The notes: generated by a model not told the origin, from the sequence alone. A DNA stretch of 49,646 bases from Klebsormidium nitens (GCA_000708835.1 DF237584.1:1-49646); one strand, 5' to 3'. Shown: positions 2,040-49,263, counted from the stretch's first letter. Numbers and translations are program-made.

Positions 2040-2433
2040 CATAGTTGCACAATACGTCAGTTTTCGAATTATCATACGCGTATTGTGCCGTATTGGTTCC
2101 AAAGATAATGATACGGCGGAAATACGGCTTAAATGCGTCAAAAATACAAAAACAGCGATTTTCAAGTTTTTTCTTGGAAAAATAATTGTAAAAGCCTCTA
2201 AAATAGCTTGTTTGACGTGACCAGGAGTTGCACGGCCTTGCAACTACCTTAACAAGCTTAATAACCAATAAACGCAAGTTGGTTAACCAGGAAAATGAAT
2301 CAAAAAGAGGAAAAAGCCAAAAAGCATGCGACGCATTTTTGAGGTATTTTAAATGGCCAATTCTTTAATACGTCAAAATTCGCGTATTTCCCTTCGCCGT
2401 AATGATACGCGTATCACGTATCGTGCAACCATG
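2040..2433. mobile_element. hAT-type non-autonomous element (MITE), 394 bp
   Basis: 17-bp TIRs: CATAGTTGCACAATACG (2040-2056) versus the reverse complement of 2417-2433, CATGGTTGCACGATACG (15/17 match). Exact 8-bp TSD ACTTGTGC at 2032-2039 and 2434-2441. AT-rich interior with ATACGCGTAT/CCGTAT subterminal motifs. Removing the element and one TSD restores the frame ANVAQ-VLVSMVLV. Confidence 0.85.
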
Positions 2434-25900: not shown

Positions 25901-28900
25901 ACAGTCGTTGAGATCAACAATATTATCATGGGGGTTTTGCCTGGTCTCCTGGACAACGCCGCCATGATCTGTGCATGTGGCGACCACGTCAAGCTGCTGG
26001 GGCTGGAAAAGTGGATTGCTCTTTAATCAAGGCTTGACAGTTTTCCATGATGCCGTGTCAGTTCTGGCAAAGATTTGTTCTGACCGAAAGAGCTGCTTGA
26101 CTCGTCAACCTTGACTCCCCCTTAAGTACGTTATTCTCGGCCTGGTGCTCGATTTGGTTGAGTGCGTCTAAAGCCGTTCGCCTTGGCGTCCGCACTCGGA
26201 AGACAGCTAGTTGCGCGGTTTGTCTTCTTCCCATGTTCGAGTCTGCAGATCAAAAGCCGGAAAAGAAACGTCTGACTTGCATGGGTGCTTGTGCCTGTAT
26301 TTCTGAAGGAGAGCAATCACTACTCTTGTACAGAGCTGATGCAGGCATGCTACACTTCGCTTGCAACCTTCCTGCATAACGAGGCTTCTATGTTATGCTA
26401 AGCACTTTCACCGGCAGCTTCAGCATGCTCTTGGTTTGATCCCATCTTATTCGTTGTTGAGCAGCAGGGACGAGTCTGATCTGCTCAGTCCACCGGCGCA
26501 GTTCCCCCTTGAGGACGCCCCGACGCTGCATTTGACCAAAATCTGTTTGATTCACTTTGTGCAATTGTCTCACGAAGCGGAGCCACAGCAGTTTTGTGTG
26601 ACCGGTCTCAAGGTGACCGGTCAAACGTGGCGTGTTTTTGGTTTGGTGCACGTTGCCAGATGGCCTGATGTCTGTTCCGCTTTTCTTGCCTTTGTCCATC
26701 TGATCATGGTTTCACGTCGCTAGGACGAGTTGAAAAGCTTGTGGCACCCCTTGTGTTGTGCCACACGACTCTTGGGCTTGCCGATGCGGAGGTCTTGGGC
26801 ACCTCATTGCCCCCTGTGAAAACTGCGCAGTCTGGAGAGGGGCGAGGATGTCAAGCTTTTCGAACACAGGCGTCCTTGCGAGGCATCCGCCAAACGGAGT
26901 GCTCGAGCCTGTCAACCATGCATGATTCTCACAACATCTTCGGATGCGAAGTGATTCCAATCCCGTCAGTATCTACTGTGGCTGCAGTCCCTTATCAGTG
27001 GCGGTTTTGGCTGTGGACACTGGTTGCTCCTCCAGTCTTCCTGTTTCGTCGAGAGTGCTCCCGCCAAATATTGTCCCGGGTGGTTTTGGACGCACAGGTC
27101 GATGAAACGATTCGGTCCTGCAATCCAACCGATATTTCGATTGCACTCCGGGTCCTGGTTCTATATCCTACGAGAATAGGCTTTAAAGCAGACGTTTTCT
27201 TTGAGCTGAGTAGCTGTCTTGCCAAGGCCTTGTTTAGTTCTTGTACTTTCAAAGCAGGCGATTAATGACGAGGCTTGGCCTGCTTGGAATGCCTTTATCA
27301 ACCGGCTTTGAGTGGGTTCATATGCACCCGCCTTGAAGTAAGTGTGCCCCTATCTACATTCGAGTCTTCGAGAGTTTCTTGGGCAGTCAACCGTGCTGGA
27401 GGCTACATTTCCTGAGGAAGCTCGGATTTCTGAAGAAGACCTTGCTCACTCAAGGCCTTACTGGTAGCTCGTCTTTGTGCAAGAGCCATCCCGATTCAGA
27501 ACAGCAGGCGCAGTCTCTTCTGTCGCTCACTCGTCACTGAAAGCGCTTGGTCACTGGTCAGAAGGACCTACATGTCAAGAGCAGTTTTGATGCCGCAATC
27601 ATGGCACCGCGTGCCAGAGGAGTTGCTTCGCTGACACTGCAGTATGTAACCCTACGTCCTGGCAGAATGATCGATCAAATACTGTTGGTGTTCAGGACGA
27701 GCTTTTCATTGCCCCTCGGATCAAGCATTTGCGTAGCGACGCTGAGGCTGAGTTGTTGAGACCACGTTTATATTTCACTGTTTCCCTCACTCGACGGTGA
27801 ATTCTCTCGACTTGCCTGTTCTGGATCTGAGCAGCTGCAGCTAGGCTATTTCGTGACCTTCTTCTCAGCCAACTGGCTTGCTGCAAGTGTTGTGGAAAAG
27901 CGTTAAAGAGCTCTTTCATGCACAGTAGTCTCTTGTGTTTTCGATGCATGCCTGCCACTAAAGTTGGACAATATCAAGCGTGAGCAGCAAGGACGCTGTC
28001 AGTTTGACGCCTGAGGCGGCGCCAAGCGAGTTTCAAAATGGGTTCTGAAGCTGCGCTCATTATGATGATAATGATGAACTCTTGCGTTTGCATTTTTGTA
28101 ATCCACAACGGATCGCAGAAGTTGGACGGGCGTAGAACGCTCAAAGTAATTCGCTCTTTACGGCAAGTGCCCTTTCAGTATCAGTAGCGAAAGTTTTGAA
28201 GGCAACCATCATGCTAGGGATTTTGCTTTACTTTCTCTTGCTGACGTGAAGGTTACTATTTTTAAAAGCCTGAATCCTCGTTTCCTGTATGACGTAGGCA
28301 AGTTTGTGACAAATTCGCACGATATAACGGGTGTGCAGCAGTTCATCCTTTTACCTTTTAGTCCATTTGCCGGCTGACTCTCTGCGCGAGCTTCTTCATG
28401 GTACGGCTACGCCGTTTTGGGTCTACGAAGGCCATCTCTCAAGTTTCTTACCGTTGGTTCCATCGAAAGGATCCCATTTCAAAACAAAGCCGCAATGACG
28501 TGCGAAGAGTGGCGCCCGATGCAGGGGTTAGCCACGTCGGGGTTTTCTGGAATGCTGCGCAAGGCCTTTTGAGCTCGTTTTAAAGTCGAATTCTCCGCAT
28601 GAGTAAGGCAGCGTCCTTCTTCGTTTACTGCTTCCTTTTAATCCCCTCGCTTCTTGCTCAAAATTCCAGTTAACGAAATCTGCGGAGCAGTCAAGACTTG
28701 TTAAGGCACCCCTTAATAAGCGTGAGGTTGAGCGAAAGGCACGATGCTCCCTTCGCACGAAGTGACTGCATCTCTGCCACGCTACTGACAATCTACACTT
28801 GATTCGTCTCCAGGGGAATCATTGAAGAGATGGGGCAGCAGACGGGGCTCTTAGGGACCATAGCGTACTACGTTGGAAAGAAGAGGTGAGCCCATTCACA

Positions 28901-31900
28901 GCCTTCAATTTGTCGCCCAACGGACGGAGCAGAACGGCCCTCTTACATCTTGTTGGTCCTGGTTAATGCCCATTGTGTTCATCCTATTCAGTCATGCTTG
29001 CCATCCTTGTCTGCAGCAGCACCTTCTCCTCGACTCGGCCAGCTCGAACTTTCTTGCAAGCAATTGCCTGCTTTTAATCTGCTCTGAGAAAAATGCAACC
29101 TTTTCATTGAGAAGCCAGCCCCGTCCAAACGTCTCCAGGTTGGACGCCCCAAACACGACGCCGGACGCCATCCGGACGCATTCTACTTTGCAGCAGCATC
29201 TCTACCTGAACTTGACCAACTTGAACTTGCTTGTAAGCATCCACCCCATTCTTACCTGCTCAAAAAGCAGCACATCAGCCGAATCAAGCCCCCTCCGACG
29301 CCTGCAGATTGGACGCGCCAAACACGACGCCGGACGCCATTCGGACGCAGCAGCTGATGGCGACCATGGTGGAGAAGGACGTGTCCGCGTGCGTCATGGA
29401 GGTGTCGTCGCACGCGCTGCAACTAGGGCGGGTCAAGGAGGTCGACTTCAACGTAGCGGTACGTACCTCCGGCTTCGGTCTCCTAGTTCGAGCGCTACTT
29501 TATTCTGCTGCACTGAGCGCCAGTCAGTGTGCTTGCAAGTGTCGAACAGAAGGAGGCCGTGAAACTCCTTCGGTTCCTGTGCAACAGTCACTCTAATCGT
29601 GGTCTGTAGTCATTGTAGTGCCACAGCAAAGTCGGTGTGTCTGACGCTTGACGGGCGGACTCTGGATGTTTCTCCTTGGAATGCACCTTGAACGAGGGTC
29701 CGTCGAGCAGTGATGATCTGTCTTTGCTTATCAAGCATTGAGCAACCAGAAGCAACCCGAGTCCGGAATCCAGTTTAAAATTCTCTACGTCCCCCCAACA
29801 CTGTGAACCCGTGATTGAGGAGCTTGTTGTTGGAGGGCCAAGAACCAAACCTGAGGCTTTCTCTTGGCTGCAGGTGTTTACTAACCTGACGGAAGACCAC
29901 CGAGACTTCCACGGGAACATGGACAACTACCGGGAGGCCAAGGGCAAGCTGTTTGCGAAAATGACGGATCCGGAGTGGCATCGAAAGGTAAGGCCATTGA
30001 CTCTTTTTAGTAAAGAGTCATTTCGGAGCTTCGGCACGTTCGACGCTGGCCGTGTCGCGGCAACGTCCGCTGACAGTGAATCCTACCTGCAAGATGCATA
30101 GGTCGCGGCAGCTCTTATCAGGATACATGACGTCAACCCTATTGATTCTACTGGTTGGGATGCGCGATTCGACTCCTCTTTCTTGCTGTTCTGATTTTCG
30201 AAGTTCCTTGATGGCGGTTTAGCAAGTGGGTGGGTCCCACTCAAGACCTTTGAACTTTGTAGCCAAAGTGGGTGCCTCTCGAGGCCTTCGGATTTTGGAG
30301 TCAGGACTCTGGATCCAAGCAGCTAACGGTCCCGGCAACTCTTGCCGGGACGGCTTCCCTCACTGGTCACAGGAAGGCTCTGTTGTTTCAATTAAAGTCA
30401 CTGAAAACAAAACGCTTTCTTTTTTGCTGCAGGTGGTTAACATAGATGATCCGAACGCGCAGTGGTTCATCAGCCAAGGAAACCCGGTAAGCTTCTCTTG
30501 CGTACGGAGTCTGCTTCAGTGCGATCGAAAGCCGACCCTTGCGTGCTGAGCTCATCCAAAAAAGATTTCGTTGTTGGCGTGGCAGCTTGGTCACCCCTGC
30601 TTTGCATTCTTGGACGCATTCTGCTGTCAGTTGTTGCCAGACCTTCATCCTGGGTGAGTCTTGAGTTTTTGTCTCATTTTGCGTGAAAAGGCTTCGTCAG
30701 AAGCGGTTCAATGTTCGCATTCTCCTTCAAATGGACTGAGGAGGAAGTAGACTTTGATCTGACTCGAAGCCTTCTGCCTCGTTATCTGCCACTCAAGATT
30801 CGTGCTAATAAGTCGCTGACTTCGACTTCGCTGCCGTTGAGCGTTGCAGAGACTCCTTTCTCGAGCGCACTCTCAACTCGTATCATAATCCGTCGTCATT
30901 TTGCCCTCCCTGCTCAGTCTGCTTTCTGACTCAACGCTTTTTCCAAGCAGTGTCCAAGGAAGTTCTACCGGAAAAGCCACACGCAGGTGGACATTGACGC
31001 ATGATCCCATTGTCCTGGATCTGGCAAGCACTGCATCCTGCTTAGAATTGTTCCTGATTCGCTGCTTGATTTCCTTTTGCAGGACGTTCCTGTCATCACG
31101 TTCGCCTTGGAGGACGAGTCCGCCGACGTCTACCCGCTGAACGTGGTGCTGTCGCTCTTCGAGACCGAGCTGGAGATCCGGACGCCGTACGGCAACCTGC
31201 AGATCTCAAGCGGGCTCCTAGGTAAGCTCACAGACCGCAGGAAAGTCGGTTCCGGATGGAAATGCTTTTGAGTGGATCAGATGCAAGGGACGAAAAGGTC
31301 GTTTGATCCAGTGTCATCCTGCGCCGGCCTTGGCGTACCCGTGCTTGAGACGAAAATGGACTGCTTACGACTCCGATCGTGCACAGGCATTGACCATGCC
31401 TAAAACATTTCTTTAAGCCGGCGTTTGAGGTGGCTTCTGGCATGCTGCCAAACTGCATATCAAGTCAGGTCTTCCTTTCCATCACTCTCGCCTTTTCGAG
31501 TTTTGGCTCACATGCCCTATGAGAAGATTCGTTCCTGGAGCCAGTGCCTCTTGGGAGTTTTGAACCCTCTTCCGAACCATTTTCCAAGTTGTGTTCGTCC
31601 ATTGGACGGCGACCAGTCTGCACCGCTCCGCCGCACCAGGTCGCCACAACTTCTACAGCGTGATGGCCACCGTCGCCGTCAGGTTGGCCATCGGTGCACC
31701 GTTTGACGCTCTCGAATTGTGAATCCCTTCGTTGAAAGGCGACCAATTCCCCCGTTTTCTCGTACCAGGTCGCCACAACATCTACAACGTGATGGCCGCC
31801 ATTTCCGTTGGATCGGCCATTGGCGCGTCGCTGGATGCCATATGAAATCATCTTTTCAAGTCGCAAAGTCCTACGACGTATCGTGATTGGCGACCAATAC

Positions 31901-34900
31901 GCCCCGCTTTCTGTTATCAGGTCGCCACAACATCTACAACGTGATGGCCGCCATCGCCGTCGGATTGGCCATCAGCGCACCGCTCGACGCCCTTTTGCTC
32001 TCATCACCAGCAAGTTCACACCCTTAAACCCCCTAACGTTCGTTGGACGGCGACCAATCTGCCCCGCTTTCTTGTGCCAGGTCGCCACAACATCTACAAC
32101 GTGATGGCCGCTATCGCCGTCGGGCTGGCCATCGGCGCACCGCTCGAAGCGATTGTGAAGGGCGTCGAGGAAGTGGACAACGTGCCCGGGCGGATGGAGC
32201 TGATTGACGAGGGGCAGCCGTTCGGTGTGATTGTGGACTACGCGCACACGCCGGACGCGTTGGAGCGGCTGTTGGATACGGTGCGGGAGTGCGGGCCAAA
32301 CAGGCTGATCACCGGTGAGCATCTCGAAGATCTGGATTCCTAAACTACTGTATCATATTTAGGAGCAGGTGTTTGAGAGCGTTGGTGGATTATGCTCCAA
32401 ACCAAACACTAAAATCACCTCCTATTCAGAAATTATGCTCATTTGCCAGACGCGCTCGAGCAGTTGTTGGGTACGGCGCGGGCTTGCGGGCAAACGGGCT
32501 GGTAACGGGTGAGCATGTCGAGGTTCTTAGAGTTGGATAAGTTCCTAGTTCTGAAACTTCTAGGAATTGTTCATTCAGGAGCGATTTCGAACTTCCAGGG
32601 TTCTCGCGGACGATTGACGCCTTTTTGTTGTGCTAGTCTGAGCTGGTAGGTTCGGTGTAGCGATGCGGAGAGCTTCAGCTTCAGTGATCTCGAGCATTTC
32701 CTTCGTGCGTTTTGGAGATTCAAAAGCTTTGTACGCCTGCGGTTTGGGGTTGCAAGAGCAACTAACTTTCAAGGGCGCTGAATCATTGTGTGCTGAACCA
32801 AGGGCAAGTTGTAGCGTTCTGACCCCTAATATACGCATGAGAACCAAAGGGAGCCGTTTGGAAGGTGTTGTTTAACGAAGCAATGGGTTTCGAAATCAAA
32901 GACACCCAAGTTTTCTCTTTCCTCTGAGGCCATCCAGATCAGTACTTTCAATCCAATCAGTTGCCCTTGACACTTGAATTGGGCCACCGCCCTAAGATGG
33001 AGCGCGTTATGGGCAAAGCTCACGGTTTGGCGTTTCTTGGCAGTCCTTGGCTGCGGGGGCGACCGCGACCGACAAAAGCGGCCGGTGATGGGGAAGATCG
33101 CGACGGACAAGAGCGAGGTGACCATCTTCACGTCGGACAACCCGCGGTCGGAGCACCCATGTGAGCCGCCAGAACCCATCTTTGTGAATAATCTCCGCTT
33201 GAGCGAGGTGTTTTTTTTTCCAGATTGAAGCACCTTATCGGTTTGTGGATGTTGCGCTTAAGGTGTCTGCGTCTACAGAGCGATTTCCAGATAGATTGAT
33301 GTCTCGAGTTACAACACCTGCGCAAGAATTTTCTAGACTTTGACATGGTCAGTCATTGAAACAACTATTTGTGGCCCATCAAGCTTTGTTGTTCAGAGTT
33401 GAACGCAACGACCCCTGGTTCGATTGAACTCCGGCCGTTAACCAAATCATGGCCATCATTTCAGACCGACATAGCGACCCCTGACCGCCGGCAGACCAGA
33501 TTATGGGGGACGTACTTACTAGAGATACCAATCCTTGATATGTCTGCCCCTGCCCGCAGACCGAATCCTGGAGGAAAGTTCAAGGGCTTCGGCTGAGAGT
33601 TAGACGACTACTTAACCTTCGAATCAGAGAAGGTCTGTCCAAGCCATTTTCCTCAGCTTTAACATAACGACCTCTAATGACCTCTGATTGCCGTTGCCCT
33701 GCCCGCAGACCAAATCCTGGACGACATGTTTAAGGGCGTCGGTTGGGAGCTGAACGAATACTTGACTTTCAGGTCGGAAAAGGACTGTTCGATTGTTTGT
33801 CTTCAGAATTTATTATGATGGCCCTAAGATTTTTGCTCCCGCCTGCAGACCAAATTCTGGACGACATGTTTAAGGGCGTCGGCTGGGAACTGGACGACGA
33901 CTAAACCTTTGGTTCGGAGAAGGTCTATCCTTGCCTTCTGCTTCAGAGTTTGGTTTAGGGACCCCTGATCTGTTCCGCTCTCCATGCAGACCAAATTCTA
34001 GACGACATGTTCAAGGGCGTCGGCTGGGAGCTGGACGACTACCTGACCTTCGGCTCGGAGAACGACTTCTACCCGCAGCTCGGCAACGGACACCGCCTCT
34101 TTGCATATGACCACCGGGCAGTCGCGGTGCGATCTGCTATCGCCATGGCCCAAGAAGGGGACTGCGTCGTGAGTACTCTCCAAACCGCTTCTCTCTCAAG
34201 GGGCACACCCTTTGTTTCGGGATCCGTCGGCGACCAGAGAGTGCAGATTCTACCTCATTGGTCGCTGAAGCGGAATTCTTAGATGCAATCTAGACCGTCG
34301 GAACAGAAAAGTGTTTCAGGACGCAAATACCTGTTCATACGACCACCGGGCAGCTGCGTTGCGGTCGGCGATCGCTATGGCTCAGGAAGGGGACTGCATC
34401 GTGAGTGCTCTCTATAGAGCATGATGAGGTGGTGTCTCATCGAATTCTGCTACAATGAAGTACCGCAGAACAGCCACACTCCTGGACGCCACCGTGAATC
34501 GGTGGCAATGAAAGGACGCCAGAAGTCTGCTGCAAGTCTGCTTGAGAACCTGTCATTTGATTGCGAGCATGGTCAGCAAACTTGATCTCATCTGGGTGCG
34601 GATCGAAGTAGCTGTCCGCTTCGCGTCCCTGAACCTGGGGTGGAGGAGCTAAATGACCAAGATGCGCTCAGACCAAGGTCGGAAACACCTTATCTCACAA
34701 GAGATCTGCTGCGCTTCAAAGACCACTCCTCTCAACGTTCTCCTCTGCAGCGCTCCAAAAGCGAGCTCGCAGCGCCCCCCAAAGGAACCCCTCGAAACTC
34801 TTCCTATTCAAGAGCGAATTTACAATGAATCAGTGACGACGGATGCTGCTCTTTTTCACGGATCGTGGCGGGCAAGGGGCTCAAGACGTGCCAGATTGTT

Positions 34901-35238
34901 CGCGGGGAGCGCTACTATGAAGTTTCATGCCTGCCTTTAGAGTCCCTTCGCTTCTCCTAACTAAGAGCCTGCTATTCCTTCTTCTTCCATGAAGAATCTA
35001 AACTTCTTTGCAACAGATTGTGGCGGGCAAGGGGCACGAGACGTACCAGATCATCGGCGAGGAGCGCAAGTACTTCGACGACCGGGAGCACTGCCGCGAG
35101 GCGCTGGAGCGGTTGGACCTGCTGCGGACGTCCGGGATCGACAGCAGCGAACTGCCCTGGCGGACGGAGTACGGCGAATCCTGGGAAGACGAGGATGAGG
35201 ACATTCCCAAGCACGACTCGGCAGATATCGCCATGTAG
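19946..35238 (+). CDS. murE: Plastid UDP-N-acetylmuramoyl-L-alanyl-D-glutamate--2,6-diaminopimelate ligase (plant-type MurE), ~844 aa, 17 exons
   Basis: Exons 19946-20260, 21253-21559, 22202-22461 (weak GTATCC donor), 22868-22918, 23303-23350, 23916-23984, 24435-24528, 25053-25161, 28814-28885, 29308-29458, 29874-29987, 30433-30486, 31083-31221, 32081-32314, 33044-33160, 33990-34168, 35017-35238. Phases are consistent; total 2535 nt. Motifs: [83 protein letters not shown]. Plant-type C-terminus [10 protein letters not shown] and a long acidic N-terminal extension. Confidence 0.96.
20470..21122 (+). repeat. Diverged ~339-bp tandem duplication in MurE intron 1
   Basis: 20470-20790 and 20809-21122 share e.g. 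GGTACACCACCCA.ACATCGGATCCATCATAC, GTAAAGACCTCTGGATATT, GAAACCAAAGATCCAT and GCCGCCTATTTGAGGGTC. Confidence 0.9.
31603..32000 (+). repeat. Three degenerate tandem copies of the intron 13/exon 14 junction of MurE
   Basis: CAG|GTCGCCACAAC(A/T)TCTAC... acceptor copies start at 31640, 31769 and 31921; the real exon starts at 32081. Confidence 0.92.
33545..33930 (+). repeat. Three degenerate tandem copies of the intron 15/exon 16 junction of MurE
   Basis: GCAG|ACC(A/G)AAT(C/T)CTGGA... copies start at 33560, 33709 and 33849; the real exon starts at 33990 (period 140-149 bp). Confidence 0.92.
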
Positions 35239-37020
35239 TGACGGAGCGTGAGCATCGAGTGATAGAAAGATAATGACGTAGTGCTGGCATCACTGCCCTT
35301 GGATAGTGAAAAGTACCGGCGAGTGCTGGGAAGAAGAGGATGAAGACATCCCAAAGCATGACCCCACCTATATAGCCATATGAACGACACAAGATCAAGA
35401 AACTTCGCCAGCAGCTATGAGCTGCCTGGTCCTGATTCCATGCCAAAAGGCAGTAGAAAGAAACATAGCCGTTGGAGAGAGCAGTGAGACAGTAACGGGG
35501 CGCCAGAAAAGAAGATAGAGATTCAGTCATCCCTGGGGCCGAGACGTTTTACTCTTGCTCTTATACTTCAGAAGGTCTCTCCTTCGCAACATTCCTTCAC
35601 AAGACTGGCGTGTCAGTCTTCTTTGTGCTTGCGTTGCTTCCAAGGATCCCCTTCCCTTCGTTATAAACTATGCTTAAATCTTGGTTTTGTCAAAAAGGCC
35701 ACTGAAGAGCCGGCGCCCGCGCCCGGCTGTGGCTTTGGCTTCCAAGCGTCGGGTCCCGATTGAGCGCTATGGACTTTGGCAGCCTCTGCAACATTCACTT
35801 GACACCAGTTGTGGCGCACAACTTTTTCACATCGACGAAGGAAGTTGATCCAAGACGGGGTGCAGCTTTCCGAGGTTGTCAGTCCACGAGCTGAGTGGCG
35901 GATGATTGTTTCCAGTGCAACTTCGCAAGGGCCTCGCCATCTTTCTCCGGTAAATCTGTGCCTGTTTATTGAGCGAAACTAGGATTGTCTCTGCACTTGC
36001 TGTTCAGCCCAGCATCATGTGGTGTCCATCAAAAATTCAGCGTCCCTTGTGGAAAGAGCTCGAGTCTTGCCGGTGGCAACAACTTTCGAACGTAGAGCAG
36101 CAAGGACGAGACTCTGAGGGCATTGGGTTCAGACAGGAAGCCAGCGCCTGACCGCCTCTACAAAGGCCGATGCTGCTGATTATGCTTTTGTCATAACTGT
36201 GCACACTTGAATTTCCGGCCACGTCTGGGTCCCCCGATCCCCCTTGCACTCATGGCGACACGTAACTAAGAAAGAGTCGGATAAGAGCATCTGATGCCCA
36301 TAAGTGTTGACCGCTTTTGTAGACAGAAGTAGGCTAGACGTCCGTAATCATCACCGCTTTCGTTAGAAGTTGTCCAAAGTTTTTGCTCTGGAGCTGTCGA
36401 GCAGAGGATGTCAGCGTTTCATTCTCACGCCTTGAAAAGATCACTGTTCATTGGTTGAGTCGAGAATGAAGCGAGCAGGACGGACGCAACGTGGCACCCT
36501 TGAGGTGCGTTAGAATGCACGGATTGGCAAGCTGCAAAGCTCTTTGATGATCGAGGTGCTGACGCCGTTTAGCGGTTGACACGGCTGGTTTGGGTTTGGA
36601 CTAACTTTCCCCGCGCTTGATACGCAAACCACTTTACTTGAAGCACCAAACGGCTCTTTTGTATTCTAGTTGATTCCGAATCTTTCACCTTTCCGAAGCG
36701 GTTCCGTACAAGTGACCAACTCAATCCTATGTTAAGTGACAGCTTCTTAAGTAAAGGTTTCGACAATGGATGCGGAAGTTTTGGGGCGCATTATTGCTTG
36801 GACCCTCTGTGTGAAATCGTTTGTAGCTAGCCTAGATCATTGGAAAGCGCATGCGCTTGAGTCCATCTGAAGTTCGAGGCCTGGTAGCTTGAACCTGTTA
36901 TTTGACGGCCGACAGGGATGTTATGCTAGAAACTCGCATGTGATGCGACCCACAAACTTTTTGCTCACCGAATGGGAGCCTAGCAGTGTTCTTGGTATTC
37001 ACCATCTTAGTCGCTCTCGT

Positions 37021-37089
37021 AGCAGCCATGATGCCCCAGTAAATGGCAACGTGTGCCAGTCCAGGTCACGTCGATCTAGGGCTGACGCT
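37021..37089 (+). ncRNA. Candidate C/D-box (K-turn) RNA module A1
   Basis: ATGATG 37028-33 and CTGA 37082-85; GCCC/GGGC stem inside the boxes; TGGCA-ACGTG-TGCCA hairpin; AGC/GCT outer stem. Expression unknown. Confidence 0.4.
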
Positions 37090-38177
37090 ACTTCCGTGCC
37101 CGCTCTGTCGGACGTTTAGGACAGCACGTGAGCGTAAGGCTCGTGGTATCACTTAAGCCAGCGCTCGTGCTTGTCCTCCTCAAACCAGGCGGGACGACAA
37201 AGAATCTCCCGTAACTAGAGGTGGAGGGTAGAGGCCCGGCCCGCCGCTTCTGAAAGCGGGGTTGGGCCCCTGAGGAAACTTACGTTTGCCAGTGTGTTGA
37301 ATAGAGAGTTGTCTTCGGAGTCACTGCGGAGGAGACTCGTTCTAGTCCTTGAATAGCAAGTAGATACTTGTTGCAAGTCCACAAGATGATGCTGCTCCTG
37401 CCCACCTTGGTTTCGTGTGCTCTAGCTGATATCTTTCTTTGCAGCTCCCAACAAAACTTGGCAAGTAGGGCTCGAAAGGGGTTGTCCAACCGGAGACCAG
37501 CTTTGGCAGCGGCTCCGTTCTCGATCTGTGGACGTAGTCGTTTAGCCGTTTCCCATGTATCCGCATCTGCCAGGACGTCTAGAGAGATTTGAAGGGCAAG
37601 CTATGATGCAAGATTCTGGTACCTTGTGCCAGAGTACATCTTGGTTTGATGCTGTTCTAAGTGCTTGCAAAAGGCCGCAACTTAAATCTACTCTCGGAAT
37701 AGTATACGAGGCCTGACGGCTAGCGGGTTTCTTAGAGTTGCTCCCGCATACGGCGTCACTTCTCTAATCGGCAGCAGTTCGGTCAACAGGTCCCTTTGTC
37801 ACACCAGCGAGAATACTAAGATGACGATTGACGTCTGCGACATGACCACTAACAGTTCCAAGAACGACGCTGTTCACTGCACCTTTTCCAAAGTCGTCCG
37901 TATCTCCTCGGTGCACTTTCAGGAAGGTCTTCAAAGACCTCACGCGATATAAGCGTTTTCAATTTTACATCCACAGATTGTGCGTTCTTAAATAAGAAGC
38001 CATGCGAAGGAAATATCATGCGCACGCGTCCAGTTGAGCCTGATGCAGGGTGGTCAACCGTCCTAGCTAGGACCTGACTGAATGATTCTTTTCTTACTAA
38101 TTGATTTGCCCAGCTGTGATCAGAAGTTGGACGGTTCGACCTTCTACACGTCAGCATCTCCTCGTTTTCTGTTGTAG

Positions 38178-38244
38178 GAGCCGTGATGCCCGTGGAAAGC
38201 GACGCATGCCATTGGATCTGACCCGAAGTTTGGGCTGACGCTGT
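38178..38244 (+). ncRNA. Candidate C/D-box (K-turn) RNA module A2
   Basis: GTGATG 38183-88 and CTGA 38235-38; GCCC/GGGC stem. Confidence 0.4.
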
Positions 38245-39046
38245 GAATCTGTGCTCACTCGTACGGACGCATAAACACATCAAGGGCGAAACATTTGGGT
38301 TATCACTTTAGATAGCGCTAGCTAGTGCTTGTGCGTCTCACCCTGAGCAGAGTGGCAAAGTGCTCTTTGCGACAAACGACGAAAGTTAGAGGGTTAGGCC
38401 CCGCCCCTCGTCAAGCGGTCTTGGCCCGTTGAGTTTGCCCGTTCGCAGCTAATGAGATAAGAGACCTGTCGTCAGATCACTTACGTCGTGAAACTGGTGT
38501 TCTTATAGTTTTATTTCGGTCTAGCTTAGCCTACCACCATATCTGGCCACTGTTGTGTGCATCCTGAGTTGAGCTGAATCTGTGCAGTTGATTAGTTGGG
38601 TTAATTGCACCCTTCCAATTTATCTTGGTTTAGTGCACTTGACAGGTCTCTCATTTGCAGTGTTCCTGATAGGCACAAAAGAGCTCTCAAAAGTAAGGCT
38701 TGACCGAATTCAGCTTCAGAGCGGCTTCTTGTTTTGAATACGACTGCAACCCTCTCCTAGCTGTATCTTCTGTCAAACTCTTCAATTGCCAACGGGAAGC
38801 TGTAAAGCTGCGCGGTGGTCGCTTGTGCCTCTCGCCCTTCTCAGAGCATATGTTTTTGAACTGTTGTAGAACCCCGCGACTGAAAACGATAGAATTCGTG
38901 TGGCTCAACTAAACTGGCCGAGAGACATTACCATTTTGCGTATCCGGAGAGACCCTTTGTTGGCTAGCGGTTGCAAATGGCTTCCGCATCGCGCCGCCGC
39001 AACTTTGATGGCGGCAGTATCTGTTCAACGGGTCCCTTTCTGTACC

Positions 39047-39125
39047 GACAGCAAGGATGAGTAACGTGTGGCATCCGAAGAGCCCAAGCCACACATTCGT
39101 AGTGCGCAGCAAAGATGAAGCTGTC
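39047..39125 (+). ncRNA. Candidate C/D-like module B2
   Basis: ACAGC-AAG-GATGA (39055-60) ... ATGA (39115-18)-AGCTGT; internal GTGTGGC/GCCACAC 7-bp stem. Confidence 0.35.
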
Positions 39126-39872
39126 CGTCCATACAAAGAATTGAACCTGGTTCGAGTGCACCTCCTGGTCCACCGCTTTGGTCGCTCATCCCGAACTCGT
39201 CTCTTTTTAAGGCTCAACCAAAAAGGGGCGTTCAGTCGTTGTTAGGCTCAGAACCACGAAACTCTACCAGCTCATAAATGAATATGAATCGTCCTGCAGC
39301 AGATCGTGCGGGTTGGAAGCAAGTGCTGACGTCGCTTCTCCGGAGGAATCTTGGAGGCCTTGTCAGTTCCTCTCTCGAAAGGCGTCTGAGGCGTGCCCCC
39401 TCTAGTTGATTCCATCAGTCAGCGGCCCACCGGGCCGATTGTTTTCCGTCAACCATTGCAACCGTGAAGGAAAGTGAGTGATTTGGGTTTCTTATTGTGT
39501 TATCGTTTGAGCTTGGCGTGCATTGAATCCGCAGCTAGGAGGACCCACTTGTATTCTAGACGTTGCCCACTCTAGAGGGGTACTGGTGAGTCCTGATGCT
39601 GCGGCTTCGTGCATCCTCAAACCAGCGCCCACAGTCAAAGAAGTTGCTCTCCGATTGCCTGAACGAATAAGACACGTTCTCACAGCCAACCTTGATCTCC
39701 TGGGTCGTTCTGTCAGAGGTCTTCAATAGAAACACATCATCGAAAACCATACACACTCCTGAAAATGAATTCTAGCGTACCGGATTCTTGCGCAAGCTTC
39801 CACTCGAAGCCTTATGCACTTAGCTTCGAGCTTTCGGTGGTTCGTTTCAGTACTTCGTTATCTTTTTAACGA

Positions 39873-39944
39873 AGCAGCCGTGATGTCAAGGTGACTGGCA
39901 ATCTCCGCCAGGCTTCCTTCACCAAGACCTGGGGCTGACGCTGT
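39873..39944 (+). ncRNA. Candidate C/D-box (K-turn) RNA module A3
   Basis: GTGATG 39880-85 and CTGA 39935-38; nested GGTGA/TCACC and CTGGC/GCCAG stems. Confidence 0.4.
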
Positions 39945-40961
39945 GGATGTGCCCGCTCGGATAGAGATCTCAGGACAGCAAGTGAGCGAACGGCACATAC
40001 ATCTTTCCATTGAGAAAGCGAGGTATGTATTTCTAAGCTAACACACAGAGCGCCCGAGCCAAACGTCGTCTAAATTGATCGACGTTGCTCTCTGCTTTTT
40101 GCATGGAATCTGCATGATTTTTGAGGGCATCTCCGAGACACGCGCTGACTCCTAGTAAGCCAATCAACCTTTTCACAAGATACTCCATTGTGGCTTCGTC
40201 CTACGGTCAGCTTCAGATCCACGAATTCCAAATTCTGTTAAAGTCACCAATCACAACTTGCGGCAAACTATGCTGCTTGATAAATGCCACCACAAATCCT
40301 ACAACAGAATGCGCGGAGCCTTGACGTTTCCACTTTCGAGTGTTCTGGTCTGAGGCGCGGCTTCTCTAGTAGATCCCGTCCCGCGAGGCCATCGGGCTAA
40401 TCAAAAGCCCGTCAACCCAGCGATTTCAGAGGAGGGAAGGAAAGTAGGCCAATTGGGCTTCATTTGTTCGTTTTGAGCCTGATTTTGGCCGGATCGATAT
40501 CAGGACCTGCTCAGAGTCTGCCAGTGACGGTGACCATTTGACATCAAGTTACGGGCAAGCTCAAATGTGGCTGCTTTGTGCAACCCAGGCTGATTACCTT
40601 GCATTGGGAGAAGTTGCTTCTCGACGTACTGCCACCACGAATCAGGCACGTTCCCAAGAGCTAACCAGGATCTTCTCGGTTGATTTTGCATGGAAGAGCC
40701 GTCTGTAGACTCACGCCTGCGAAAATGAAACAGAGATCGCAATCGCTGAAAGATAGGTTGAACTCATTGATTAATAGCGCATGAGGGTCCCCCCGAACTA
40801 GCCCCGCGCATAGATTTCACCTCTCACACGACGTCGATGATCTAGGACTTGGAGTGCGGGATAGGGTGTGGGAATAGGACATTCCCACTGATCTGCAAAT
40901 GGCACGTGTTGTTGGTATTTCACAGCAGCATTAATATTTCTCTGTTGTCGTCGTACTATAA

Positions 40962-41032
40962 AGCCGTGATGCCCAGTGACCGGCAACGTTAAGTTGCCAT
41001 TCCACCTCGCGATGGTTTGGAGCTGACGCTGT
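40962..41032 (+). ncRNA. Candidate C/D-box (K-turn) RNA module A4
   Basis: GTGATG 40966-71 and CTGA 41023-26; GGCAAC/GTTGCC hairpin. Confidence 0.4.
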
Positions 41033-41271
41033 TTTTAAATGTGCTCGCTCCGGTGAAAGTGCGGAAGCTTGAAACAGCCAGTGAGTGCGCGATGGGCAAG
41101 TCATCCAGACTTGGCGGCCAGCAACCGCGCGTTGTATTTTCTATTTTTCTCATTTTCCATGAGCATATGGAGGCCTGCCAGCTAACGGGCCTCTAGGAAT
41201 TGCTTCCGCTTAATGTCAGCAACTCAGATGCTCGTCGCAATTGTTGTCAAAAGGACGTTGCTTGATTGCTA

Positions 41272-41341
41272 ACAGCAAGGATGAGTATCTGTTGGCAACG
41301 ACAAAAGGGCCAAAAGCCATGGTATGCCAAAATGACGCTGT
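41272..41341 (+). ncRNA. Candidate C/D-like module B3
   Basis: ACAGC-AAG-GATGA (41279-84) ... ATGA (41332-35)-CGCTGT; TTGGCA/TGCCAA stem. Confidence 0.35.
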
Positions 41342-44300
41342 GCATATGTTGAATTTGTTGATGTGTGTGTCTGCGGAAGTGCAGCGCCCGGTTCGTGGGC
41401 ACGTCCTTATATTTTCACGCTCTTGCTACCAAGCCTAATCTCGTCGAATGTCGAGACTAGCAGTATTTTTGGTGTTCACCATCTTAGTCCCTATCGTACT
41501 AGCCATGATGCCCCGTGAATGGCACAGTGTGCCAGTCCAGGTCACACCTGAAAGGGTTGACGCTATTCCCGTGCCCGCTCAGTAGGACGTTTCAGGACAG
41601 CACGTCAGCGTAAAGCACGTGTAATGTGTCAATCAGCGCTCGTGCTTTTGCTTCCCAGGGCTCTAAAAGAGGTAGTACAAACCGAGATCAGCTTCGGCAG
41701 TGGCTTCGTTTTCAATTCATGGACGTAGTCGTTTAGCCCATGTATCTGCATCTGCCGGAACCTAGCTAGGTAGCTTTGACGGGCAAGCTGTGACGCAACA
41801 TACTGGTCCCTCGTGCCATTGAAGTTTTCGAGCTGATGCTGTTCAAGTGCTTGCAAACGGCTGCAACTGGAAATGTACTTTTTGTTTTTTTAGTTCCGCA
41901 ACAACACACGAAGCCTGACGGCTAGCGGGCCTCGTAGAGTTGCTTCCGCATCGCAGCAGCTTCTTCAAGCGGCAGCAGTTTCTGTCACCAAGTCCCTTTG
42001 TCACAATAGCGAGAATACTCAGATTGCGTTTGACATCCGCCACATGTCCGCCGAAAATATCATCGAGGGTGACGCTGTCCAGCTTTTTGTTTGCACCTTT
42101 CATGACAATTCCGCTGTAAGAATAGATTGGTTGCCAAAAGATCAGAACAAGTTTTCCACAGCTGGCTCTATCTCCTCAGTGGGCGTTCAGGAAAGTCATC
42201 CAAAACTTTCACATCAACAGAACGCGGTACAGCTTTGCCTTTCTTAAATAGGCAGAAAGGCAAAGTTCATTCGCATAAGTCCATTGAGCCTGATGCAGGA
42301 TGGTCAACAATCCCAGGCCTACGAACTGACTGATTGCACCTTTTCTAACTGAATCGCCGACGTCTGGAATTCGTTCTGACGTCCTAAATCAGCATTTCCC
42401 CGTTTGCTGTCGTCGAAGCCGTGATGCCCGTGAGAAGCGGCTTATGCCATTGATCCTGATGTTTCAAAATCTGTGGCTCGCTGTAAATTCACCTGCCCAC
42501 TCGCACTCAACGGTTCAAAATACCAAGTGGGCGACACGCATGTGTCAATTGTTTAGCTAGAGCTCGTGCTTGCGCTTCTCACCCCGATCAGCAGGACGGC
42601 AGACAGCATTTTGCTATGAGCGACGAAGTTTTGAGAGTGTTTGGCCCCGCCCCTCGTCAGGCGATCATAGGCCCACGCACCTTGCCTGTCCGCAATTTTG
42701 TAAACACATGCTGTCTTCAGAATCCTTCCGTCATCAATCAGTTTTCCGGTCTTCACCAACCAGCTTATCTAGCCACAGTTGTGTCCATGATCTGATTTCA
42801 CCATTCAGCTTACCTCGTTGTCAGCGCTCTTGACATGTCTCTCGTTTGCAGTGGTCCTGACACACAAAACGCGCTTGCAGAATGTGAGCTTGACCGGACC
42901 CAGCTTCAGCAGCGGCTTCTTGTGTCTCGATATGACGGCATCTTTCGCCTTGTTGGTGATATCTTTCAGACTTCTAATGAGACGACGGGCAGCTGTGATG
43001 CCACAAGGTGGCCGTTTGTGCAGGCCTCTCGTCTTTTCTCCAACAGATGTTTGCAAACTTGCAAAGTGCTTGCAGAAGGCCGCGATTGAAACCCTTAAAT
43101 TGCGTACATCCGAAGGACCCTTTTTTCACTTGCTGGCCTCTGAATACCTTCCGTATCACGTCGCCGCAACTTTCATGATGGCAGTATCTGTTCAAAAGGT
43201 CGCTTTTTTTCCCGACAGCAAGGATGAGTAACGTGTGGCATCCGAAGGGCCCGAGCCACACACATTTGTAGTGCTCAGCAAAGATGAAGCTGTCCGTCGA
43301 TACATATATCTGCACCGAGTTCGACGGCACCTCCCGGTTCACTGCTCTGGTCGCTTATCCCAATCCTGTCTCGTTTCAAGGCCCAATCACAGGGGGCGTT
43401 CGATCGTTCTTAGGGTCAAAACCACGAATATCCTCCAACTCACGACTGACAAATTGTCTTGCAGCAGATCATGCGGGTTGGAAGCCAGTGCTGACGTTGA
43501 TTCTTCGACTTCTTGGAGTCCCCTTTCTAAAGTTCGAGGCGCGGCCGTCTAATTGATCCCTTCTGTCTCCGCGTGCCCACCGGGCTGATTGGATTCCGTC
43601 AATCCTTTGCGAATTGTACGTGAGCGGGATTGAGTGACTTGTGTTTCTTCTGTGTTCCTACTAGTAGTCAAGCTTGGCGGTGCTTTAGTTCCGTAGCTAT
43701 GAGGATCCGCTTGACTCTAGACAATGCCCAATCTAGAGTGGTATTCGTAGACCTAATGCTGCGGCTTCCTGCATCCTTAAACCAGTACCCACAGTCAAAG
43801 GAAACGAATACCAAAACGAGTCAGATACGTCCTCAGAGCCAGAACTGATTTCATGGGTCATTTAATTTGTAAAAGGGTCTTTAGTATAATGATTACAAAA
43901 GCGAAAATTCCTTACACAGGAATCCCAATCCTGAAAGAATTGTCAGCGTATCACTTTTATACGCAGGGTTTGACTCAAAGCCTCACGCATAGTCAGAACT
44001 TTGATCTGAGCCGATACGTTTAAAAAGTGCACGAGAGCCGTCCTGGTCCACCCTCACTCCTTTGCTGATCATATTCGTGCTTTCGGCGATCTGAATATCT
44101 CTCCTTGTCTTTTGACGTAGCAGCCGTGATGCTGACACTCTGGCAACCTCTGCCAGTTTCGTTCACTAGGACTTGGGGCTGCCGCTGTGTATCTGTCCGC
44201 TGGGATGTGGTTTAAGCACAGCAAGTGAGCCGAAGGCACGTGTGATCACTCTGGTCCGCGCTCGTGCGTGTGCTTGTCAAATCAAGCGGAAAGAGCCTTC

Positions 44301-44364
44301 TGTATCTAGTGGTGGCTGCTAATAGAGGACCCTGACGGCGCTTCTGAAAGCTCGTTTTCCAACG

Positions 44365-44429
44365 TAGCAGCCGTGATGCCCATTGACTGGCAACGTGTGC
44401 CATTCGGGGACCAATTTGGCGCTGACGCT
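44365..44429 (+). ncRNA. Candidate C/D-box (K-turn) RNA module A8
   Basis: GTGATG 44373-78 and CTGA 44422-25; TTG/CAA and TGGCA/TGCCA stems. Confidence 0.4.
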
Positions 44430-45150
44430 CTACTGTGCCGGCTTGGCTGAAAGGCACGTGTCACGAATTTATGCTTCGCTCGTTTTGGGGCTTGCCAACC
44501 CAAATGGGACGTCAAAAAGCCGTTTGTAACTAGAGGCGGAGGTCAGATGGCCGGGCCCGCCGCTTTGAAAACGAGCTTTGAAGTTTCTTGGCCTATAAGG
44601 GAACTGACCGTACCGTTGCCACCTTGTAAAAAGTCAGGCTTTGTCGTCGGATCGCTTACGCGCCAAACATGTTTCTCTTCTCTTTTGAGCTTCTGCATGG
44701 CCCGCCCGCGTATGCAGCCAGATTGCGTCCATAAGCTGGTGCTGTTCCTGTGCATGCGCACCTCAGTTTTAAGTTTTCCTTTCGCAATCTGCGATAAGCA
44801 GAGCTCTCGAAAGTTGAGGCCAGACCTGAACCAATTTCAGCAGAGCCTTCTGTTCGCATACGAATGCAATTCTTGCATCCATGTATCGGCGTCTGCGAAG
44901 AATCAAAGGTGGTTCATGGGCAGCTGTGATGCCAGGATCTGGCCACTAGGGCCACCAATCGTCCGGTGTATGCAAGCTGCCGCTGCTTGGGTGTTTGCAA
45001 AAGGCCGCAACTGGATATTATGGTTTGCGTTTCTTAGTTTCTCATGACAGTAATTCAGAGCCTGTTGGCTGGCTGGCCCACGCGATTGGCCCCCGCTTAC
45101 GTCGGCTATTTCAAACAGCAGTAGGTGTAGATGACGGGTTGCATAGCCGA

Positions 45151-45219
45151 AACAGCGAGGATGGACAACATTTGGCATCCTCAAAGTGCCACTTATTGGT
45201 CCGGAAGAATGACGCTGTT
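45151..45219 (+). ncRNA. Candidate C/D-like module B6
   Basis: Perfect 7-bp terminal stem AACAGCG/CGCTGTT; GGATGG 45159-64 and ATGA 45209-12; TGGCA/TGCCA inner stem. Confidence 0.35.
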
Positions 45220-45965
45220 CATTTGTTCCATCCGCACCCTCGGTTCGCACCCAGTTCACAAGCTTCGTCAAACCTGACCGAGTGCCTTTTCACGAGGCGT
45301 TCATTCGAAAAGTCCATTTTCTGTCAAGCAAGCTCCGACTCCACTTTACCCACGTGCTCATCAGGCCAAACATGTCTTCAGGCGAGGGTTGCCGCGGCTT
45401 GAAAGGCAGTGCTACCGTGACTCCTTCGGAAGAAATCTCGGAGGTTGTGTCAGTCCTTCTCGAGGAGGATTTTGATGCCAGGCACCTCTTTTCAATCCCC
45501 TCTGTTCGTACGGTAAAAATAAGCTAAATTTATACCACATTAAAAGGGGCATGGGCGATCTGGGTTCCTTTCGTACATCTATCCGCTAGGTTTCCTTCTA
45601 ACGTCTGTAGCTATGAGGACTCGTTGTGAATCGAGACGTTGTCTAGTCTTGAGGCACTGTGGGACGCTTCTGATGCTGCTACTTTATGTGTTCCTGCATC
45701 GCCACTGTTGTTCCATCAAGTTGTTTACTAAGTGCCACGAAAACACGCTCTTGAAAGCACGCTCTTGAAACCTAGTCTTGATCTTCACTTCTTCCTTTTC
45801 GAAAGTCGCTCCCATCAAAATATCAACGAACGCTATGCAGCAGACAACTGCGACGCCGTAAGCGAAGCCAACCACACGAATGTTTGATGCACAGAAGTCC
45901 ACCCAAAGTCCGGCGCAGAGCTTCACACACGAGCTTTCCTTATCACCCATTCCTCGTTCTTCGAC

Positions 45966-46040
45966 GCAAGAGCAGTGATGCCCAATGGGCCGGCAAAATT
46001 TGCCAATGTAGTTAGCAGTGACTCGAGGCTGACGCTTTGC
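45966..46040 (+). ncRNA. Candidate C/D-box (K-turn) RNA module A9
   Basis: GTGATG 45975-80 and CTGA 46029-32; GGCA/TGCC hairpin; extended outer stem GCAAGAGC/GCTTTGC. Confidence 0.4.
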
Positions 46041-47815
46041 AATGGCCCGCTCGGATGCATGGCTGGGAACTAGGACTGCGAGTGAACCAGAAGCACGTAT
46101 TAAAAATTTCATCAGCTCTCGTGCTTTAGCTTGCGAACCCGATCTAGAAAGCCTCGACCAGAAAGAAGAAGCCTTTTGTAACTAGAGGCGGAGGTCCGAG
46201 GGCTTGCCTGCAGCCTGCCCTGCTTCGAAAAGCTCGGCGTTGGAGAGAAGTTACCTGCAATGAGGTCGTCGTTGTGTTCACTGAGCTTTTGGCATGCCAG
46301 CAATTCAAACGAGGCTTCAAGATGAGACTTCTAAATCGGCCCATACCCGTTCTGACTAGCGTGCCGAACGAGCCCAAGGCCGGGTTACAATGGTGCTTGG
46401 CCGCTGGTTTCACTGCTTCCAGTTTGTTCGTTTCGTCCTGAGATATGTATATACCTCTTCCCCGTCCACTTCTGATTGCATCAATGCCTGCAGACTTGTG
46501 AATTTCGCCAAATTTGCCGTTGAAAACCGGGTTGCGATGGCTTTGAGCATTATCTCTGTTACCTTATTCGGTCCCTGCGTAACAATGATAAGCTAGTAGT
46601 AGAGTGCTCTAGACCAGTCTCTCGTTTTCTGTTTTAATGACGAATATTGCTCTTGAGAGGTAGGGCAGATCCGATCGGCTGTTCCTTGTCTCACGTCCGA
46701 CTGTGACCTCGAGTCCATGATTTCGTCTGCGAGATCTTTGGAAGACGTAACTTTCGCGCAGCTGTGATGCCGAGGGCTGGTCGCTTGTGCGAGTGGTGGT
46801 CTCTCCCTGTAAACAACCATCAATGATGCTGTTTCAATGCTTGAAGATATTAAAAGAAGACGGCAAACGGAAATCCAATTCCCCTATAACTTTTTGTGGG
46901 CTTAGAAGGCCTGTTGGCTAGCGGGCCTCAGAGAGTTGCTTCGCCGCTTTTTCAGGTCGTACCAGTGTTTGCCAGGAGGTTTTCTTTGCATAAGAGCGAG
47001 GAGTGAGCAAAGTTAGGCATCTCCATTGACCCAATAAGCGTAATGTGGTGACGCTGTTCATCGACTCGTCCGAGTGCAAGGCCCGTTCACGCTCAATGAT
47101 CGATATCGCTCGACGTCCCAGCTAGCAACATGTGGAAATAGCTTGATTGGGCGTCTCGCCTCCGTGTTTGCTCGGCTTCCGATTCACGACTTCGAATTTG
47201 GATAGAGTCACAAACCCTCTGACGCGGATACTATCGAGGATGCGTGGAGGCCGCCTTCTCGTTTTTCCTTTCAAATTGTCTCTGAGGGGCCTCTTGTAGA
47301 TCCGTGGCTAAATCGAGTCGCACCATCCCTGTCAGTTTCGCGGAAATCGTGGCGATTAGAACTTCGCTGGTTCACTTTAATATTTGGAGTTCGGCTTTGC
47401 TTCGACATAGCTAGGATATGTCAGTGTGTCGGCCACTCGGGAGCGCTTTAAACCGGTTCGTCTGATGCTGCTCATTTGCGCATACTAGAACAATATCAAG
47501 CTTCAACAAAGCTGCTTCTTGACTGCCCGAAAAAGCTAGCCATGATCTTCTCGGTTGATCTTGGCAAGGTCGTCAGTAGACTCACGTTCAAAAGCACCAA
47601 ACAGAAAACACAGCTACTCTCGAAAAGCAAACGGATGATCCCGACCGTATGCATTGCACGAGTCCACCTAAAGCGTCCGCGTATCTTGAACGTTACAAGA
47701 CGACAACTCTCAGGACTGAAACGCGATAGTATTGTTATTTTCTTCGCTCTCTACGTAACAGATTGCGTTTCTGTTGCGACATCAGCCACGCCTTCGTCTT
47801 TTTTGTGCATAGTAC

Positions 47816-47889
47816 GTAGCCATGATGCCCGGTAACCGGCAACGTGTGCCATTTACGGTTGTCCAACTGGGGATCTAAGGCTGACGCTG
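47816..47889 (+). ncRNA. Candidate C/D-box (K-turn) RNA module A10
   Basis: ATGATG 47822-27 and CTGA 47881-84; GTAA/TTAC and GGCA/TGCC stems. Confidence 0.4.
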
Positions 47890-49190: not shown

Positions 49191-49263
49191 GCAGCTGTGA
49201 TGCCGGGCAATCTGGTCGCTCGTGCCAGTACTTGTTGTTATTGGCGCTCAAAGCTGACGCTGT
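49191..49263 (+). ncRNA. Candidate C/D-box (K-turn) RNA module A'6
   Basis: GTGATG 49197-202 and CTGA 49254-57; CAGC/GCTG outer stem; GGGC/GCTC inner pairing. Confidence 0.35.

Follow-up and report, generated by a model that had tools for sequence, protein, structure and literature searches.

The question raised by this locus is what kind of element has been repeated behind a MurE-like gene of the streptophyte alga Klebsormidium nitens, and whether its predicted stems have been kept by compensatory base changes. The stretch analyzed, hereafter the window, comprises 49,646 nucleotides (nt) (GCA_000708835.1 DF237584.1:1-49646). It contains a tandem array of about 25 related modules of three types in A-B-C order, running from ~36.1 kb to past the window end. 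The repeated modules are real, and so is their design, which is like that of box C/D small nucleolar RNAs (snoRNAs). Judged from the sequence, the type-A units are probably, if by no means certainly, box C/D snoRNA-like genes that stand in a tandem array, mostly orphan, on the sense strand behind the MurE-like gene.

The module array and its boxes

Ten type-A copies were found, all on the + strand and with no match on the - strand. A regular expression for the two boxes, a MAFFT alignment and a covariance model agreed on these ten, which a sequence-only reading of the same DNA had already picked out at the same places. The covariance model (R1) was built from the sequence-only MAFFT alignment of the ten copies (A1). 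Nine copies scored 77-103 bits and the decayed copy 42421 scored 59 bits, with E values for the ten between 1e-15 and 7e-29. Modules follow one another at 0.2-0.8 kb on one strand, and the A-B-C triplet has a period of 1.2-1.9 kb. An old segmental duplication links two parts of the array, 36969-39709 and 41445-43862, at 68-82% identity. Within the array the word TGATGC occurred 26 times on the + strand and twice on the - strand (~3 expected), TGACGCT 13 times and not at all, respectively, and the 5' motif AGC-NNN-GA[UC]G, in the motif census, 25 times and three times.

The 5' motif of type A consists of AGC and GAUG with three bases between them (CGU or CAU; AGU in copy 45975), and the 3' motif of CUGA, one base (C) and GCU. 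Read as RNA, the two motifs would form a kink-turn with the stem AGC/GCU, a 3-nt bulge, tandem G.A/A.G, U.U and G-C, after which the helix runs on as CC/GG (a GCC/GGC extension) and encloses a hairpin built on an invariant GGC/GCC core. The sister types follow the same kink-turn rule, type B as AGC-UGU-GAUG...CUGA-C/U-GCUGUUC and type C as ACAGC-AAG-GAUGAG...AUGA-A/C-GCUGU, and both have a hairpin of the UGGC...GCCA type. A box C of the form RUGAUG was present near the 5' end in 10/10 type-A copies, and a D-like box lies 55-65 nt from it (CUGA in 7/10, UUGA in one, CUGC in one and the GA deleted in one). The columns that never vary in type A are AGC, UGAUG, GC and GCCA in the hairpin and, around the second box, G.U..CGCU. 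On average, column identity was 63% in the type-A module alignment vs 46% in the 200 nt of downstream flank.

Selection on the module is supported by these data. The boxes are invariant or nearly so and keep a strict order, spacing and strand, although the spacers of paralogues are only ~65-75% identical; selection on a ribonucleoprotein (RNP) core of the box C/D type accounts best for this. It is unlikely that the array consists instead of decaying tandem duplicates of an ancestral snoRNA or snoRNA-like cluster, with most or all copies non-functional and the stems left over from earlier sequence. Box lesions, which occur in ~40% of array modules, speak for decay: in type A the GA is deleted in 42421 and the D box is CUGC in 44126, in type B the D box is CUGC in 44917, and 38793 and 42986 are degenerate, and several type-C copies have box lesions too. 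However, UGAUG and the AGC/GCU stem are each intact in all ten type-A copies, and such intact boxes beside drifted spacers are hard to obtain without purifying selection or ongoing gene conversion.

A feature of the DNA rather than of an RNA, such as sites bound by proteins or pieces of a satellite or transposon, is scarcely probable. The hairpin core is a DNA palindrome and the units contain TGACG and CACGTG words, but the two boxes are strictly fixed in order, spacing and strand, neither terminal repeats nor transposase open reading frames (ORFs) were found, and the box pair fits the kink-turn rule base for base.

Several points weigh against a box C/D snoRNA-like identity, as do the structural tests and the comparison with a related alga described below. 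The seventh base of the C box is C in all type-A copies and never the canonical A, and TGATGA does not occur on the + strand of the array. One extra unpaired base stands between box D and the terminal stem, and the fourth pair of this stem is mismatched in 5/10 type-A copies, leaving 3 bp. No D'/C' boxes were seen; the interior of the module is a hairpin and has no UGAUGA-like C', and a GUGA word there follows box C after only 3-5 nt, which leaves no room for a guide. In eukaryotes D'/C' boxes are often degenerate. A search of the window against Rfam gave no match at the gathering score, and two array matches at E ~3 (cut-off E up to 5) were at chance level.

About 20 nt separate the hairpin from the D-like box, and this tract differs in every copy, even between close paralogues. 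Its position and length suit a methylation guide, and its last three bases pair with the bases after box C. It is very improbable that the modules are canonical guides, each directing 2'-O-methylation of a specific site in ribosomal or small nuclear RNA (snRNA) through the tract upstream of box D. The place and length of this unstructured tract would fit, but its variation among copies, the pairing of its last bases and the lack of an Rfam snoRNA match all speak against it, and within the window antisense targets of the tracts were found at chance level only. The tracts look as if they stand in guide position, yet are unconstrained. Because the tract is not conserved between copies and ~40% of the modules have box lesions, birth-and-death evolution with most copies orphan is most likely. 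The segment 3' of the main hairpin had no significant structure alone (combined z -1.9, driven by one copy), as would be expected of a guide tract, and a second local hairpin there in place of a flanking helix was rejected.

No snRNA-type promoter words (upstream sequence element, TATA) were found in the array. In plants, RNase III and exonucleases normally free snoRNAs from polycistronic precursors (PMC5122169), and with this precedent and no promoter words, processing from a long sense transcript appears likeliest. If the modules are snoRNA-like genes, a long sense transcript would be made, either by read-through from MurE or as a transcript of its own. Snu13/15.5K would bind each kink-turn, Nop56, Nop58 and fibrillarin would assemble on the bound kink-turn, and exonucleases would trim the transcript to an RNA of ~65-70 nt in which the variable tract before box D would occupy the position of a methylation guide.

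The same organization could belong to one long structured non-coding RNA, or to a set resembling snoRNA-related long non-coding RNAs (sno-lncRNAs), whose kink-turn hairpins would offer Snu13-type proteins a platform or sponge in cis. We regard this as rather improbable. It would agree with modules every 0.2-0.8 kb on one strand that have no promoter elements of their own, with further conserved hairpin-like blocks in the spacers, and with a non-canonical-stem side that is prolonged to form a closed hairpin, a shape shared by protein-binding kink-turns like the U4 5' stem-loop; however, conservation of the spacer blocks is much lower than that of the boxes. A bolder form of the snoRNA-like reading, and a long shot, is a fast-turning-over library of kink-turn RNPs, in which a constant scaffold of boxes and GGC/GCC hairpin would carry a free tract of ~20 nt and direct 2'-O-methylation or binding of non-ribosomal RNAs, or would give protein sponges of the sno-lncRNA type. 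Such a library or set of sponges would, if true, add a layer of regulation that has not been described for the green lineage.

Further blocks were noted around the modules. The 3' flank of type A (37084-37180 of the window and its equivalents) contains the blocks GUGCC-CGCUC...GAGCG-AAA-GGCAC, able to form a 10-bp bulged helix. This helix is perfect in 39880 and partly kept elsewhere; in 44373 a deletion leaves its outer 5-bp half, GUGCC/GGCAC, perfectly paired. It could be a processing hairpin. A spacer hairpin family of the form GAGGCC-N12-GGCCUC was seen by eye at 37709..37732 (+), where pairing is kept through two G-U wobbles, with other copies near 41169, 41909 and 46905. About 130-160 nt upstream of each type-B module stands a word resembling a 3' splice site, with a CTTGAC-type branch word, a pyrimidine tract and CAG (38632-38662, 42823-42853, 46603-46630, 37430-37446); these words hint that the array may have exons and introns like those of a host gene. 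Where the kink-turn has U.U, the decayed type-C remnant at 36095-36180 has C on both sides (GACG...CCGA), a paired non-Watson-Crick change that is a single case and possibly due to chance.

Conservation and pairing in the stems

The sequence-only reading held that the helices of the type-A module keep their pairing while their sequence changes. The strings given for the helix that flanks the hairpin can be read in the copies concerned, as GTGA/TCAC (41505), GGTGA/TCACC (39880), GTGA/TCGC (40966, one G-U), GTAA/TTAC (47822), (A)TTG/CAA(T) (44373) and GTGG/CCAT (38183), but they do not occupy homologous columns. The 3' arm lies ~7 nt past the hairpin in 41505, 37028, 39880 and 40966 and 2 nt past it in 47822; in 44373 it follows a deletion and, as in 47822, adjoins the hairpin, and in 38183 it re-uses the 3' arm of the hairpin itself (GCCA-T). 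A helix in the same columns is thus limited to 37028, 39880, 40966 and 41505. Among these, 37028 and 41505 are recent paralogues, and 37028 has an A.C mismatch that had not been listed earlier. In copies 44126, 45975 and 42421 no in-register flanking helix is present.

The variants described for the apical hairpin are present, and all of them are extensions around the invariant GGC/GCC core, whose columns 41-42 and 54-55 never vary. In the GCCC/GGGC stem inside the boxes the first three pairs are mostly kept (first pair, nine G-C and one G-U; second, nine C-G and one U-G; third, seven C-G, one U-G and two mismatches), and the fourth forms in 5/10 copies.

For an unbiased test the four helices of that reading were written onto alignment A1, and 500 column shuffles served as the null. 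Paired cells amounted to 79.7% vs 79.0% in the shuffles, 181 of which were as high. Four pairs had changed on both sides, vs 2.4 expected (80/500 shuffles), and the covariation score of 0.161, vs 0.137, was reached by 54/500 shuffles. When the partners were slid out of register, pairing fell to 24-43%, which indicates that the consensus is truly self-complementary in register and that the pairing is carried by conserved columns. RNAalifold on A1 recovered only the 4-bp GGCA/UGCC core and a spurious 3-bp contact, with a covariation term of -0.14 kcal/mol. Folds of single copies were weak (z from +1.3 to -2.2), and the minimum-energy structure differed in almost every copy. The non-Watson-Crick cells of the stems comprised 19 G-U and 13 A-C, so there is no strand-specific tolerance of wobbles and the wobble asymmetry is uninformative as a test of strand. 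This near equality of A.C mismatches and G-U pairs and the lack of significant covariation are what decaying duplicates would also be expected to give.

The flanking helix was also tested free of any alignment, by pairing the 5' flank with the 3' flank of its own module or of other modules, over 19 modules of all types. Duplex energy was -3.46 kcal/mol for cognate and -2.85 kcal/mol for non-cognate flanks (p = 0.067), and helix length at fixed geometry was 4.16 vs 3.77 bp (p = 0.069). A helix of at least 4 bp formed in 55% of the non-cognate combinations, so stems of 3-5 bp picked by eye are what chance would give. In families of diverged paralogues such stems, sought across shifting registers, arise by chance about half the time, and this calls for caution.

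Two results were more favorable to structure. With kink-turn closure and hairpin forced, flanks folded better than shuffled flanks (mean z -1.56), a figure to which the conserved CCC/GGG contributes most and for which the copies are not independent. In a model-fitted alignment of 16 matches (types A, B and C and lone copies), covariation was 0.203 vs 0.128 (0/500) and two-sided changes numbered 9 vs 5.2; this alignment is biased toward the model, and its covariation excess is therefore biased as well. Individual changes of interest are found in a lone module within an intron of the MurE-like gene. Next to the kink-turn bulge its terminal stem, GCAGU/ACUGC, has a compensated change from C-G to U-A, and its flanking helix GCAA/UUGC replaces the GUGA/UCAC of type A in nearly the same geometry. 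These double changes, and the 4-nt loop insertion of 40966 that is accompanied by a longer stem, are consistent with an RNA hairpin, yet they are single events.

The claim that pairing is kept while sequence changes was overstated, and covariation was not significant on the unbiased tests. As for selection on RNA structure, the invariant boxes and stem argue for selection on the module, but the compensatory changes are not significant. The inner stems are plausible and are held mostly by conserved sequence; compensatory change was not demonstrated at the available power.

Table 1. Modules and neighboring features in the window (box and stem sequences as RNA)
Feature	Coordinates	Strand	Score (bits)	Remarks
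Type A, 37028	37024..37089	+	103	AGC-CAU-GAUG...CUGA-C-GCU; hairpin UGGCA/UGCCA; flanking helix GUAA/UCAC with one A.C mismatch
Type A, 38183	38179..38242	+	85	Boxes intact; 5' arm of hairpin decayed (A.C mismatch)
Type A, 39880	39876..39942	+	92.8	Terminal stem 5 bp; hairpin CUGGC/GCCAG; flanking helix GGUGA/UCACC
Type A, 40966	40962..41030	+	83.5	4-nt loop insertion with longer stem GGCAAC/GUUGCC; flanking helix GUGA/UCGC
Type A, 41505	41501..41564	+	93.1	Paralogue of 37028; D box UUGA; hairpin UGGCAC/GUGCCA; flanking helix GUGA/UCAC
Type A, 42421, decayed	42417..42483	+	59.4	Perfect C-like box; D-box GA deleted; hairpin weakened
Type A, 44126	44122..44186	+	90.4	D box CUGC (key A lost); hairpin CUGGCA/UGCCAG; no in-register flanking helix
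Type A, 44373	44369..44429	+	85.2	Internal deletion; TTG/CAA in different register
Type A, 45975	45971..46036	+	89.6	AGC-AGU-GAUG; hairpin GGCAA/UUGCC; no flanking helix
Type A, 47822	47818..47888	+	77.4	GUAA/UUAC 2 nt from hairpin (7 nt in other copies)
Type B	37599..37653	+		AGC-UAU-GAUG...UUGA-U-GCU; hairpin 7 bp; flanking helix AAGAU/AUCUU
Type B	41786..41840	+		C-like box GUGACG
Type B	44922..44984	+	24.4	D box CUGC; hairpin UGGCC/GGCCA
Type B	46760..46830	+		From motif census
Type B	49193..49261	+	18.7	Terminal stem 8 bp
Type C	39050..39122	+		ACAGC-AAG-GAUGAG...AUGA-A-GCUGU; hairpin GUGUGGC/GCCACAC
Type C	41274..41339	+		Hairpin UUGGC/GCCAA
Type C	43217..43291	+		Paralogue of the 39050 copy
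Type C	45154..45216	+	10.5	Hairpin UGGCA/UGCCA
Decayed remnants, start of array	36095..36600	+		Type C at ~36095-36180, truncated A-like near 36290, mini-module near 36540; by eye
Lone module, MurE intron	27583..27640	+	20.2	E 7e-4; hairpin UGGCAC/GUGCCA
Last coding exon and stop of MurE-like gene	35002..35238	+		Relatives carry Pfam PF02875 Mur_ligase_C

The MurE-like gene, a related alga and the rest of the window

The MurE-like gene (Mur ligase; chloroplast-wall) was recognized from + strand ORF pieces rich in G and C at third codon positions (GC3-rich) between ~25.1 and 35.24 kb, which carry Mur-ligase motifs: a GTNGKTT P-loop, MEVSSHAL, a further block of ten residues, and GCGGDRD and GKGHE blocks. 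Its last exon matches Mur_ligase_C fragments, so the gene ends ~0.9 kb before the first repeat remnants, and the array trails it on the same strand. The lone module lies ~9 kb before the array, between the MurE exons at ~25.1 and ~29.3 kb, and is therefore intronic and on the sense strand.

The last MurE exon also matched an ORF with 92% amino-acid identity in the Logan assemblies of three runs from a related alga (SRR14092358-60), whose MurE exons are 84-88% identical at the DNA level. Past the MurE stop of this relative (L002 2566-4975, L003 337-2746) the sequence is ordinary, and a Ras/Rab-like gene follows ~2.2 kb on, convergent on the other strand. No modules were found behind the MurE gene of the relative, either by blastn (no match) or with R1 (E at least 1, filters off). 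The array is thus either specific to the present lineage or lost in the relative, and was not anciently fixed at the locus; its absence at the syntenic site also fits decaying duplicates. Relatives of the modules were sought by pattern in Joint Genome Institute (JGI) metagenomes, and the one match, in an AT-rich, ORF-dense contig of bacterial or phage-like character, was rejected as chance. No paper describing these modules was found.

The MurE-like gene also shows tandem micro-duplications of exon-boundary pieces, in its introns and past the stop codon (31596-32150, 33545-34067, 34104-34412, 29012-29349, 35168-35379). When translated, these pseudo-exons nearly repeat the starts of the real exons, as in ...PGRHN.Y.VMA... 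and a stretch of 18 residues, and they number two to four in the window vs one in the contig of the related alga.

The window has no long ORFs and no transfer RNA genes and reads as eukaryotic nuclear DNA. Other identities for the modules were considered and rejected. Protein coding on either strand was set aside, as ORFs that overlap the modules look random and have no homologues. A selenocysteine insertion sequence (SECIS) element is an AUGA/GA quartet in the 3' untranslated region of a selenoprotein mRNA with an in-frame UGA. Here there are ~25 tandem copies, no coding ORF nearby other than MurE and no selenoprotein context, and the SECIS models of Rfam were unmatched. The palindrome resembles a DNA site for NFI, an animal factor, but its spacing is 7 and not 5.

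Far from the array, ORF pieces with a GxPGxGKT P-loop (NB-ARC/NACHT-like) at 628-5886 (-) flank an assembly gap of N at ~4.35-4.97 kb; the pieces tried had no Pfam match at E <=0.01. GC3-rich exon-like ORFs lie upstream of MurE at 12775-13383 (+), 14115-14687 (+) and 21232-22470 (+). One of these is TraB-like by motif reading, and the others are very acidic and of low complexity.

Comparison with known RNA systems

The modules share with box C/D snoRNAs, including those of plant and green-algal clusters, a 5' RUGAUG and a 3' CUGA joined by a terminal stem into a predicted kink-turn, a length of ~65-70 nt, and the occurrence of many units on one strand without promoters of their own, with one module inside an intron of a neighboring gene. 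They differ in the C at the seventh position of the C box, in the extra base after box D and in having no Rfam match. The helix of the module moreover runs on beyond the boxes to surround a conserved hairpin, where box C/D snoRNAs have D'/C' and a second guide. Spacers in plant snoRNA clusters are ~100-300 nt, whereas the modules are spaced at 0.2-0.8 kb in triplets of ~1.2-1.9 kb. Orphan members of the box C/D class have been described from plants (PMC5122169, PMC2875012).

The Snu13/15.5K/L7Ae-binding kink-turn hairpins, among them the U4 5' stem-loop and the U3 B/C motif, likewise have a 3-nt bulge, tandem G.A and a non-canonical stem that runs on in Watson-Crick pairs up to a closing loop. 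In contrast to these, the modules have a second stem of the C/D type, with U.U and G-C, and a much larger interior, and they are arrayed repeats.

In its organization the array of putative snoRNA-like units resembles the mammalian SNORD115/SNORD116 (Prader-Willi) and SNORD113/114 arrays and the sno-lncRNAs, with diverged tandem units of a few related types at kilobase spacing on one strand. Mammalian orphan C/D arrays comprise dozens of diverged tandem copies with conserved ends and a birth-and-death pattern, as described in part in PMC10592975. The lineages are unrelated, and within a family the mammalian units have a conserved antisense element, which the algal modules lack. To our knowledge, mammalian imprinted loci, where orphan snoRNAs are still poorly understood, are the only comparable organization. 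If the algal modules are expressed, kilobase-spaced tandem arrays of orphan box C/D-like RNAs would exist in a streptophyte alga that stands near the stem of the land plants, and this alga would provide a second, independent system in which to ask what orphan snoRNA arrays do.

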